This document shows positions 1 to 5,358 of a stretch of 12,975 bases of DNA, piece by piece. Source of the stretch: Vitrella brassicaformis CCMP3155 (lineage: Eukaryota; Protista; Chromerida); the NCBI GenBank assembly GCA_001179505.1, contig CDMY01000886.1, forward strand, positions 1 to 12,975, given 5' to 3'. The notes below the pieces were generated by a model. It was not told the origin of the DNA. It was given only the letters and a program-made list of their open reading frames with translations, and did no database searches. A program made the position numbers and the translations under genes. Position 1 is the stretch's first letter, and each line of letters starts with the position of its first letter.

Positions 1-505
1 TCGCGCTCAGCAGCCGTCTGATGATCTTGGGGAAGGGGATGCGCTCCTCTCCCTGCCGGAGCCCATGCTTCGACAAGTTGAGGTAGCCCAGCAGATGCTC
101 GAACCGCCAGCCGGACGGCCCTGGTGCTGCGCCTTTTGCTGCTGAGCGGAGTGCCTTCGCGAGCATCTTGGGTGGGACGTCAAGTGCCTCGGGCTCCACG
201 TTGACGTCCGGCTTGGTGACGGGCGTGTTGCGTGAGGGGTGGAGGGCTTGCAGCTTGGCGTATGTCTCCTCCGTGGCTGGGGCGACTGGGGTGGAGTCCA
301 GCTTCTTGGCCGCTCGTGTGAATTCCCCAAGCTCCACTAGCCGCTTGGCTGTCATGAACGCCCTCTGCGTTGCCGTGTCGTGGGTGGGGTGGGCGGGTGT
401 GGGGTGGATGGCCGGTGTCGTCTCGGTGCTCTTTGGTGCGAAATCGGCTCCCTCGCATAGCAGCAGCTCCCATTCCCCCTCCCAAAACAGCCGAAATCTA
501 TTGAC
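1..505 (-). mobile_element. CRE-like (RLE-class) non-LTR retrotransposon ORF fragment: region immediately N-terminal to the RT core, open to the left window edge
   Basis: A minus frame missing from the ORF track (no stop before the edge) is open from 505 to 2. It reads VNRFRLFWEGEWELL...RAFMTAKRLVELGEFTRAAKKLDSTPVAPATEETYAKLQALHP...MLAKALRSAAKGAAPGPSGWRFEHLLGYL. The R..F..G.W..L, LV..GE...A...L and LRSA..G.APGPSG...EHL blocks are typical of the pre-RT region of CRE-type elements. TGA at 508-506 bounds the frame. Confidence 0.85.
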
Positions 506-603
506 TCACTGGGGCCGTCGATGATGATGCAATCGTCGTCGTGGTCTGCATTGCCGTCTCCGTCTCCCTGCCCCTGCCTGCCGTCATGCACCTGTCCACT
601 CAC

Positions 604-891
604 GCCGTCGTACCTTGATGCAAGTTGCTCGGGGGCCTCGTCTACGGCAGCTCGTGAGATGTCCGTTGCAATAGCGGCAGGACGGAGGAGAATTTCATGC
701 TGCTGCATCGCATCCAACAACTCCAGAGTGCACTCTTCTCGACAGGAGGGGCATGTTGAGTGGCGGGTCAGCCAGCGTTCCACGCACTGGCGGTGGAAAA
801 CGTGCTGCTCGGCACAGGGCAGGGTGATGAAGTCGAGGCGCTCGCCGCGTTCTTGGCAGATTAAACATTCAAGGTCCTCGGTTGCCATTGG
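604..891 (-). CDS. Exon encoding a RING-H2 (C3H2C3) zinc finger, putative E3 ubiquitin ligase domain (domain 742-867)
   Basis: CLICQERGERLDFITLPCAEQHVFHRQCVERWLTRHSTCPSCR gives C-x2-C-x13-C-x3-H-x2-H-x2-C-x10-C-x2-C with the conserved Trp. Flanked by acceptor tctcag (893-892) and donor gtgagt (603), both phase 0. Confidence 0.92.
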
Positions 892-1215
892 CTGAGACGT
901 AACACATCCATGGAAACACCAGAAAAGAAACAGACACACCTTTCCTACTTCGGTCTGATCGCCACGACTGCCAGCAGTCTCGGTAGTATCCTGCACGTTG
1001 CCCTACAGAGAAAGAAAGTTGCAGAGCGCATGCATATTCATAGTGGCACACATCTCATCCCTCGTCCACTCAGTTGTTCACCTGCTCTTCATCGCTCAAA
1101 CTCCGTCCCGTCGCGACCGTTGGGTTCTCGGGCTGTGTGGTTTCATCACGATGCCCCTGCACAGAAAGTTTCGGAGCGCATTCACAGTCTCACACATTCT
1201 CTTTCTCATACTGAC

Positions 1216-1598
1216 ATGGCGGCGAAAATACAGCTCCGGCTCCAAAAGTTCATCCACATCATCATCTTCTTCATTCTGCTGGGTTGGCTCCTCTCTCTGC
1301 TGCTGCTGGCGCTCCAGCCGAACAATGAGAGGTACAAGCTCCTCTTCGTCGTCCTCGCTGCTCTGCGAGTCGTCTTCGTTGACAAAATGATGCTGTTGTT
1401 GAGTGTCCGGCTGCTGCTGCTGTGGCGTCTCGTGCTGCTGCTGCAGTGTCTCCTGCTGCTGTGGTGTCGCCTCGCCATACACAAACTCCTCGCCATGCGC
1501 AGCTGCGTCCTCCGGCTGGTCTTGGTATGGCGTGTCGTTCCCTGGGGCTGCCTCAGAGAAGCCATCCTCATCTTCGTTGTCCATCTGCATTCTCGGGC
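1216..1598 (-). CDS. Exon encoding an acidic, Gln-rich disordered linker between the OTU-like and RING domains
   Basis: MDNEDEDGFSEAAPG...QQQETLQQQHETPQQQQPDTQQQHH...EDDEEEL...EEDDDVDELLEPELYFRRH. Acceptor ttgcag at 1600-1599 follows a (GT)12 tract; donor gtcagt is at 1215. Confidence 0.65.
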
Positions 1599-1608
1599 CT
1601 GCAAGCAC

Positions 1609-1632
1609 CACACACACACACACACACACACA
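1609..1632 (+). repeat. (CA)12 microsatellite, intronic
   Basis: Direct read of the sequence. Confidence 0.95.
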
Positions 1633-1699
1633 TCCCACAATGCCTCTATGTCTTCTCTCTATTTTCCTCTACTTCCAAGTTGGGATGCTTGAAAGCCGC

Positions 1700-2170
1700 C
1701 CTCGCCTACGAGCCCCATCCAATGGCCGCCAGTTGTCAATACGTCGAAACTCACGCCGCTCGTTGACGGGTTTTCGACGTGCCGAAGGGAAATCGGCACC
1801 CTGCTGCTTCTTGAATAGACAGTTGTGCCCGACGAAGCTATCTCTTGCTCGTTCGCTAAAATGTAGACCCGCCCACGCACCTCTCGCATTCGGAAAAAGG
1901 CGATCATCTCCGTCACCGTCAACGACGCCCCGGGAGTGCTCATGTACGCGAGATACTCAACAAAGGACAGCCCCGAGATGTCCAGGTGCTCGGGAGGGAG
2001 ATGCGCTTGGCCGTCGGGGCTCTCGACCTCACACAGCGGCAGGAAATAGTCCGGGTTCTGCCGCATGTAATCCACAATCTCGCTCCGAAGCTGTGTCTCT
2101 CCGCCGTTGCAACTTCACTGAAGTTCTGGCACAGGGCCGCAAGACCATACTCTCCCGCTCCTGGCATGTC
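1700..2170 (-). pseudogene. Degenerate OTU-like (ovarian tumour) cysteine protease/deubiquitinase domain with a frameshift
   Basis: DMPGAGEYGLAAL aligns with the OTU motif xxPGDGNCLFRAL, with Tyr (2149-2147) at the catalytic Cys position. A frameshift lies at about 2094-2114. Then QLRSEIVDYMRQNPDYF...SFVEYLAYMSTPG...EMIAF...RVYIL...ISLRH...GGHWMGL matches the OTU helical core and His loop (His at 1724-1722). Confidence 0.6.
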
Positions 2171-3519: not shown

Positions 3520-5358
3520 CTGGAGCACAAAATGTTCATCAAACAGACACACTGCAACTCGCCAGAAACCAAATCGATCATCGACATTACCTCGATTGCT
3601 TTCAGATGGATGCGTTGGTTGCAAACACTGACATTCGCGTCGCCTGGACCGTGAATGGGCGCTGGATGCACAGGGGGTTTTGCAGGACAACGGGGATAAG
3701 AGGGTATCTTGTCTCCACTACAGGTGTGCTGCGAACAGCAAATCCAATCCAATTAAAGCTGCGACAGACCTCGCGTATATGTGTATGTGCATTCTTACTC
3801 GTCTTTCATGTGTGAGAATATCTTTGGTGCACAAAGAATGCAGTCGTCGGACAGCATCAGTCGACTGTGTTCGAGTCTGGCGTAGTTCATGAGGATTTTT
3901 AAGTCCTGGCGCCCTCCGATTGCACACAGATTACCTGACCAGATGCCGTCGTGATGCTACAACCAAACAGACGCCAACCAACCAACAAACACCAAACACT
4001 GGACATCCAAGAGACCCTCCTTTCGCTTACGCCAGAAAATTCATATATGTATCCGACGCAGCGTTGCCTTTGAGGTCTTTCAGACCATACTGCTTCGTCT
4101 TCTGTAAAGGAGTCACACGCTTTGTGTGCACCCAGCAGCAGAAGAGGAATGTGTGTTTGTAGTCAAATGTTGGGTCCTCATATCTTGTGAGGCTCATTTC
4201 CTACTGCCAGCGTACTGCGCTCGACTCGTCTCCATTCGCAGACAACCCCAGCCTTGCGTAGATCCTGTTCAGCTGTACCTCTGTCGAATCGTTACTTCCA
4301 GTGATGTCCCGAAACGAATGCGCCGACTGCAGACCGGCACGCGACAACGGCCGCTGACGTGCGACTCCGCTTGCTGCTGCTGTTGCTGCTGTTGCTGGGT
4401 GCGCTGCATGTTGCCGTACAGTGTGTGCATTAGCCGATTCCACAGCCGAGCTAGGGCGGCGTCGTACCCACGTTGTTGTTCGCTTGTGTTTGAACCTAAA
4501 GACCATACACAAACGCACACACGCAAAGACACACAGCCACAAGCAATAGAAACTGACTGTGTCGCTTTCCTGACTGCCCGAACGCTTCTCCACTTGACGT
4601 TCCACTCGCGTCTCGCTGGTCATACAATTGCACTTCGCGTGCAATCACCCACGAGTACATCCGGTTGATCGGCTCAAAGCACACGGTCTCGAAAAACCCA
4701 CATGTGTACCTATTCCCCACGCGGTCGAGGTGCAGCGACAGCTCCAACATCCATCGGTGAAGACGACCCACGATTTTCGACACAATTCGGAATGCCTTCA
4801 ATGGAAAAACACACATCCAATGCCGCCACCACCACTCTCATTCATGTCTCGATACCGTGAGAGTCGCTTGAACGCTCGCTCTATCCGTCTGAGAGCGATG
4901 AAAGGTATTTCGAGTCGTGTACAGCCTGTTCCACCCTCCAGACTGCTGTATCTGAATACAGAGCCACAGAATGCATTCTCGCCTGCGAGACATAATGAGC
5001 ACTCACCATAAACGGTGCATGCGAATTCTGCCGGATGTGCATGTGTGACAGTCGTGCGCTGTGCACACGTACTAAAGGCACGTGCAGTGCACCCATCACA
5101 ATATTTCCATTCGTGCTGTGCATCAGTTTGTTCCACATTCGAGAAGTGAGCTTCAGCACCTGCAATGGCCAACATGTAAGGTCGTATACAGACTTTGTAT
5201 TCAACTCACCTGCTGCACGTAAGTTTTGCAGATGTTGCCGTGCATCGCATGCATCTGACGGTTGTGCTGTCGGCGGTGACGTCGGTTGTAGCGTCTCACC
5301 GCTCGCAGCGCTCCTTGAATCCTCTCCAACTCTACATACACAACGACACGTCACTTTG

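Follow-up and report, generated by a model that had tools for sequence, protein, structure and literature searches.

The start of contig C886 of Vitrella brassicaformis CCMP3155 raises the question of whether a RING-H2 zinc finger is spliced there, in frame, onto the reverse transcriptase (RT) of a retroelement. The window analysed here is the whole stretch formed by the first 12,975 bases of this contig, and its start falls within the element because the genome assembly breaks in this repeat. The initial annotation had read five successive introns on the minus strand (1215-1133, 1081-1003, 948-892, 603-546 and 509-365) and had proposed that they produced a spliced RING-H2/RT chimera, either a domesticated RT or a retroelement that contains introns. 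At the sequence level this reading was correct: the five intervals are GT-AG and phase 0, the exon translations hold, and the GTGAGT donors at 603 and 509 as well as the acceptors ggcaatgcag and ggcaacgcag are present. We consider it very probable, though, that the locus represents the sense insertion of a 5′-truncated LINE into the last exon of a RING gene, giving rise to a read-through RNA and to no RING-RT fusion.

The genome searched was the 72.7-Mb assembly (1064 contigs); host exons were searched separately and reading frames were followed exon by exon. RNA evidence was provided by run X4, in which the locus is represented by a minus-strand spliced contig of 4975 nt (record 11). This is an assembled contig and not raw reads, and its splice evidence is limited in that contigs lose rare isoforms and hide transcript ends. 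Within the analysed stretch the X4 contig presented six joints, all of them CT..AC on the plus strand. Runs X3 and X5 retained the introns at the same intervals, as expected of DNA, and X4 accordingly corresponds to cDNA. All runs possibly come from one culture strain, and their agreement is then not fully independent. The introns supported by RNA are the following:

2697-2635, minus strand: intron, the seventh with RNA support, placed from a located loose end
2469-2402, minus strand: intron, X4 joint
2332-2269, minus strand: intron, X4 joint
1672-1599, minus strand: intron of 74 nt, phase 1, holding a (GT)n run, X4 joint
1215-1157, minus strand: intron of 59 nt, phase 0, acceptor tttctgtgcag, X4 joint from 1216 to 1156
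1081-1003, minus strand: intron of 79 nt, phase 0, X4 joint between 1082 and 1002 with GT..AG at that place
948-892, minus strand: intron of 57 nt, phase 0, X4 joint between 949 and 891

Two of the five introns first proposed, 1081-1003 and 948-892, were thus recovered exactly. The outermost kept its donor at 1215 and lost its acceptor, since the X4 contig joins at 1157 and not at 1133 (the joint is listed as 1155/1215, with the cut at +1), a change that keeps the intron in phase 0 and gives the exon 8 more codons. The remaining two, 603-546 and 509-365, were unspliced in X4. Further upstream, intron 1672-1599 links an exon with an OTU-like domain to an acidic, Q-rich exon, and in record 11 of X4 position 1672 (record position 4042) adjoins position 1597 (record position 4043).

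A separate observation concerns the two neighbouring phase-0 introns of this region. Intron 1215-1157 with exon 1156-1082 aligns, acceptor to acceptor, with intron 1081-1003 and exon 1002-949, and the mean column identity between these paralogous units within 1215-949 is 73%. Judging from this alignment, a unit of one intron and one exon seems to have been duplicated in tandem, and this would be the reason why two phase-0 introns follow each other.

The fusion to RT depends on the two intervals that lie closest to the contig end, and both have a different make-up from that of an intron:

603-546, minus strand: claimed intron 4, exonic, crossed by the X4 contig with no joint
509-365, minus strand: claimed intron 5, composed of 10 nt of host exon (509-500) and 135 nt of element ORF2 (499-365)
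891-500, minus strand: host part of the terminal exon, one open frame encoding a RING-H2 finger and a 78-codon tail

The terminal host exon contains all of claimed intron 4 as well as the 36-nt micro-exon that had been placed after it. From 891 to 470 the X4 contig is collinear with the genome, a stretch that includes 603-546, the GTGAGT at 509 and the border between host and element. When the joints 604 to 545 and 510 to 364 were sought in all X4 contigs, again assembled contigs and not raw reads, neither was present, so the spliced 510-to-364 product that had been suggested as a check did not appear there. Base composition also set these intervals apart: the RNA-supported introns (n=6) have 44-47% GC and 9-13 pyrimidines in the 17 bases before the AG, in contrast to 66% and 62% GC and 4 and 8 pyrimidines for 603-546 and 509-365, respectively, which are purine-rich at this position. 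Read in the RING frame, 603-547 shows a codon-position GC of 84/44/67, similar to that of the neighbouring exons and coding-like. As for claimed intron 5, the RT-like sequence noticed inside it (RFRLFWEGEWELL) is indeed element ORF2 sequence, and ORF2 continues uninterrupted across this segment in other copies and in P0001, a 1017-aa protein that was called independently.

The alternative that survives best is exonisation, that is, a minor isoform using the GTGAGT donor at 509, with or without removal of 603-546, and the AG at 365, so that the RING-H2 finger would be fused to ORF2 from residue 119 (RAFMTAKR...). We regard it as quite unlikely. Its sites are canonical and in frame, the host transcript does run into the element in sense, and rare isoforms are invisible in contigs. 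However, its joint is absent from the X4 contigs even though six other joints of the same transcript were seen, and the two intervals differ in composition, as described above, from the introns of the RING gene. Moreover, an in-frame path is easily found: among GT..AG pairs of 40-400 nt leading from the RING frame to the RT frame free of stops, we counted 104 single-intron and 9,886 two-intron paths, the proposed one among them. Because about 10,000 such paths exist, an in-frame connection between RING and RT can be attributed to chance. The acceptor at 365 lies within conserved ORF2 coding sequence common to all copies and encodes ...DTATQ/R... in every one of them, and the two claimed acceptors, one in host sequence and the other in a conserved codon string of the element, resemble each other by coincidence. 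It is very unlikely that the OTU-like/RING-H2 gene and the sense-oriented LINE form a chimera, spliced or read-through, at low frequency and that such loci are snapshots of the 5′ capture of ubiquitin-system modules by the LINEs of this alga, an idea to which the weakly RING-like finger in the ORF1 of the family lends itself.

The sense insertion of a truncated LINE, which we favour, is supported by the place at which the homology between the window and the other copies of the element ends. The relevant features are:

1-499, minus strand: 5′-truncated copy of a multi-copy RLE-type non-LTR retrotransposon, covering ORF2 residues 74-239
499-500, minus strand: host/element junction, the 5′ end of the copy, spanned by contigs of X3 (470-1054) and X4 (470-891)
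354-352, minus strand: TGA stop of the host RING frame, reached after 49 element codons that are not in the ORF2 frame

Positions 1-364 of the window gave at least 10 genome matches with 96-100% identity. With 300-1700 as the query, other copies matched 300-499 alone, and 500-1700 had no other match in the genome. At the boundary the other copies share the upstream sequence ...GGAGAAAGTGGGAGCGG/AGATTTCGG..., and the window reads ...CCCCAGTGAGTCAAT/AGATTTCGG..., in which the part before the border is unique host sequence. The other copies go on upstream of 499, where their homology to the window stops, and the window copy is therefore 5′-truncated at this position. Its 166 codons correspond to residues 74-239 of P0001, with 93% identity and free of gaps. 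The RT domain of P0001 (RVT_1) occupies residues 260-461, and therefore the window holds the N-terminal region before the RT, with an APGPSGW motif, and not the RT core. The copy would be a young one, and it lies in sense orientation relative to the host gene.

A 5′-truncated copy of an RT element had been offered in the initial annotation as a fallback, and in this form it stood: the element is multi-copy and the copy is truncated at 499. Two of its details did not. Landing just after an intron donor fails because the GTGAGT at 509 lies within an exon that is transcribed straight through, and the X4 contigs gave no evidence for the use of an acceptor supplied by the element. A further check that had been suggested, the co-occurrence of RING and RT in several copies, showed the opposite, namely a junction that is unique in the genome and a RING gene that is single-copy.

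A contig that ends within a repeat could also have been misjoined, the more so as the scaffolds that carry this repeat contain many 300-N gaps with fragments stacked between them. Such an assembly artefact is nevertheless highly improbable, since the junction was recovered both in a DNA contig of X3, which belongs to another study, and in the RNA-derived X4, each of which spans it. The host-side 23-mer at the junction occurs once in the genome, and the X4 contig extends 30 nt (one k-mer) past the junction before its assembly graph breaks off at the repeat. A loose end corresponding to the empty site was sought in four runs and none was reported. In the search for a target-site duplication, none of 30 inspected 3′ flanks of the family started with a convincing repeat of ...GTGAGTCAAT; the 3′ junction of the window copy itself lies beyond the contig end.

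According to the reading by sense insertion, a dispersed and transcribed RLE-type LINE inserted in sense into the terminal exon of a gene that is present once, is rich in introns and encodes an OTU-like domain and a RING-H2 finger with an acidic linker. We infer that 5′ truncation occurred during target-primed reverse transcription; the copy lacks about 2.6 kb, namely all of ORF1 together with 73 codons at the start of ORF2. RNA of the host gene is spliced at the genuine upstream introns and then passes unspliced over the junction into element sequence. The RING frame would thereby gain 49 out-of-frame element codons, and translation in this frame would end at the TGA at 354-352. The RING frame is open, unspliced, from 996 to this TGA (ORF 996-352), and a stop at 508-506, immediately before the junction, closes the ORF2 frame. 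Past the RING finger the host frame stays open for 78 codons, as far as the junction, which makes it most likely that coding sequence rather than a 3′ UTR was cut by the insertion. Beside this, the TGA at 354-352 shares bases with the first in-frame ATG that is left in the ORF2 frame (ATGA, 355-352). Stop/start overlaps of the ATGA kind are linked to reinitiation in some LINEs; the one at this locus is probably due to chance.

What kind of element entered the gene was deduced from its other copies. Its layout was taken from L084, a gap-free and nearly full-length copy of 5453 nt from another assembly, together with L020, the longest copy in the present assembly. The family measures about 5.5 kb and consists of a 5′ UTR, ORF1, an overlapping ORF2 and an (ACC)n tail. 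In L084 a 652-aa ORF1 overlaps an ORF2 frame that is open for 1146 codons. The first reading frame is located as follows:

L084 46-2001 and L020 4162-4800, outside the window: ORF1, with an N-terminal Cys/His finger and, after it, a long basic stretch of low complexity

The Pfam model RVT_1 matched ORF2 of L020 with E=1.3e-16 and P0001 with E=2.4e-16. In P0001 it was the only Pfam match, with no AP endonuclease (Exo_endo_phos), and the RT starts at about residue 237-260. On the C-terminal side of the RT, ORF2 carries a CCHC motif (CSCG..H..LCC) and the motifs RHD, E, IDLYW and DVTI. These nuclease-type motifs, candidates for a PD-(D/E)XK restriction-like endonuclease (RLE), align with the RLE of R2 only in a second HMMER stretch that is not significant, and they matched no Pfam family. 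PDB matches at E below 1e-4 were R2 proteins only (9nl3, 9dou and 9nl2; E=5.5e-06 to 1e-05). The 3′ end of the family reads ...CTTACCCTTAACC(ACC)n and occurs at least 55 times in the genome; the (ACC)n tail that follows ...GGACAATCTTACCCTTAACC varies in length. Flanks were unrelated at all 30 inspected 3′ ends and at all five full-length 5′ ends, indicating that insertions are dispersed and not site-specific. An Rfam scan of the 5′ flank of the full-length L020 detected no RNA gene, and some subfamilies have other 5′ modules. Altogether, these sequence features point to a dispersed, young LINE of the RLE type (R2 superfamily), the RLE being recognised from its motifs.

The family also appears to be transcribed. 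Word depth in X4 was 78-987 for the element part and 18 for the host gene (4 to 55 times), which suggests transcription from many copies, contig depth being a rough guide. In the genome, the scaffolds that bear the family (C559, C744, C822, C526 and C790; L020-L024 and L038-L048) show element fragments between 300-N gaps, often at contig ends. A tandem-repeat gene considered on C744, C822 and C559 was rejected, as its copies are split by the 300-N scaffold gaps; because of these gaps, the apparent tandem copies and the long ORFs that cross them are assembly artefacts. Outside this assembly, P0006 and P0007, from other NCBI/ENA records, are 41% and 36% identical to ORF2 over the full length, and more distant relatives with 24-30% identity come from metagenomes, so that the lineage reaches beyond the Vitrella element family. 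The element proteins are labelled "unnamed protein product" in their source records and a full-text literature search retrieved no paper on non-LTR elements of Vitrella; the RLE-type LINE family of this alga appears to be undescribed.

The ORF1 of the family has a finger of its own. Its pattern, C-x2-C-x13-C-H-x3-C-x2-C-x12-C-x2-C, is invariant in four copies with 76-94% identity. It scored below threshold against RING models (E=0.005-0.09), and its Atlas neighbours belonged to RING families (0.90-0.91). An AlphaFold prediction of the finger, built from four near-identical copies, reached a mean pLDDT of 60.6, with one of five models above 45, too poor for searching. BLASTP of this finger against the host RING-H2 gave E=0.06. 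By its pattern and these scores the ORF1 finger would be weakly RING-like and unrelated to the host RING-H2. An intron-bearing retroelement or domesticated RT gene in which OTU/RING exons natively precede the RT could invoke this weakly RING-like finger, but we give this idea almost no credence, since window 500-1700 is single-copy with no close OTU-like/RING paralogues, full-length copies have a different, unrelated upstream sequence and ORF1, and the RT frame is stopped at 508-506, at the junction itself.

The gene that received the insertion was characterized exon by exon, and its two recognizable domains are in different condition:

870-739, minus strand: RING-H2 (C3H2C3) zinc finger, Pfam zf-RING_2
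2268-1673, minus strand: exon with an OTU-like domain split by a frameshift, stops in all three frames

The RING exon (891-604) matched zf-RING_2 in Pfam with E=1.4e-11 and 44.9 bits (cut-off 27.3) and zf-rbx1 with E=3.3e-08. The pattern CxxC..C-x3-H-x2-H-x2-C..CxxC at 870-739 corresponds to a predicted E3 finger. The gene is single-copy, and neither the OTU-like nor the RING pieces have close paralogues in the genome. A word search with the 214-aa RING ORF, within the length window of the tool, retrieved no relative at E<=0.001 and no annotated model of the RING locus. The OTU-like exon is interrupted. Its N half lies in the frame of the upstream exons, contains PGAGEYGLAAL, with Y at the Cys position, and runs into a stop at 1942-1940. 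The C half lies in the RING frame, which in the upstream direction is open no further than 2117-2115, and the frameshift that separates the halves is located near 2095-2117. Neither half matched the Pfam OTU model, and a genome-wide Pfam OTU search yielded 8 sites, none of them in the window; Atlas, a language model, placed the features of the C half in OTU clusters (0.93, with 194 shared features). An OTU deubiquitinase whose catalytic Cys and His share a reading frame was considered and rejected, given the lack of a Pfam match, the Cys-to-Y change and the location of the halves in different frames.

Over the OTU-like exon the X4 contig is identical to the genome with 0 gaps. As the RNA contig carries the same frameshift, the locus would be a transcribed pseudogene, or only the ORF from the ATG at 2066-2064 would be translated. 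Both the frameshift and the insertion indicate that the OTU-like/RING host gene is probably decaying, and it may be a transcribed pseudogene.

We compared the family with known systems. RLE LINEs comprise the clades R2, R4, Dong, CRE, HERO, NeSL and Utopia (PMC5678591). The Vitrella family shares with R2 and other RLE LINEs an RT that is not preceded by an N-terminal AP endonuclease and is followed on its C-terminal side by a CCHC motif and putative nuclease motifs (RHD..E..D..D-V-T), as well as 5′-truncated copies and R2 proteins as the best matches among solved structures. It differs from them in being dispersed with unrelated flanks and not site-specific, in its two overlapping ORFs and variable (ACC)n 3′ tail, and in an ORF1 that has a RING-like finger and a long basic stretch of low complexity.

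The CRE clade (CRE1/2, SLACS and CZAR of trypanosomatids) inserts into spliced-leader RNA genes. An RLE-type architecture and a protist host are common to this clade and the Vitrella family. In contrast to the clade, the 3′ flanks differed in 30 of 30 cases and the 5′ flanks in five of five, and the 5′ flank scanned with Rfam held no RNA gene. The description of the element as CRE-like thus holds broadly, for a restriction-like-endonuclease LINE, and no further, because the site-specificity by which CRE, SLACS and CZAR are defined is not found here: insertion at spliced leaders does not agree with unrelated flanks and with a copy located in a protein-coding exon.

In mammals, sense insertions of L1 in terminal exons truncate host ORFs and give read-through chimeric transcripts. 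The window locus resembles these insertions in that the copy is 5′-truncated and in sense, the host transcript enters the element, and a new out-of-frame C-terminal tail derived from the element ends at a premature stop. It differs in its chromerid algal host, in the RLE type of the element and in the additional frameshift in the OTU-like exon of the host. The locus therefore requires no new mechanism. What had been read as a five-intron fusion of an E3 with an RT reduces to three real introns and two chance GT-AG pairs around an insertion, and for annotation this means that gene models splicing from 510 into the repeat are not trustworthy. At the same time, the analysis outlines a family of RLE-type LINEs, recently active and transcribed, in a chromerid alga.
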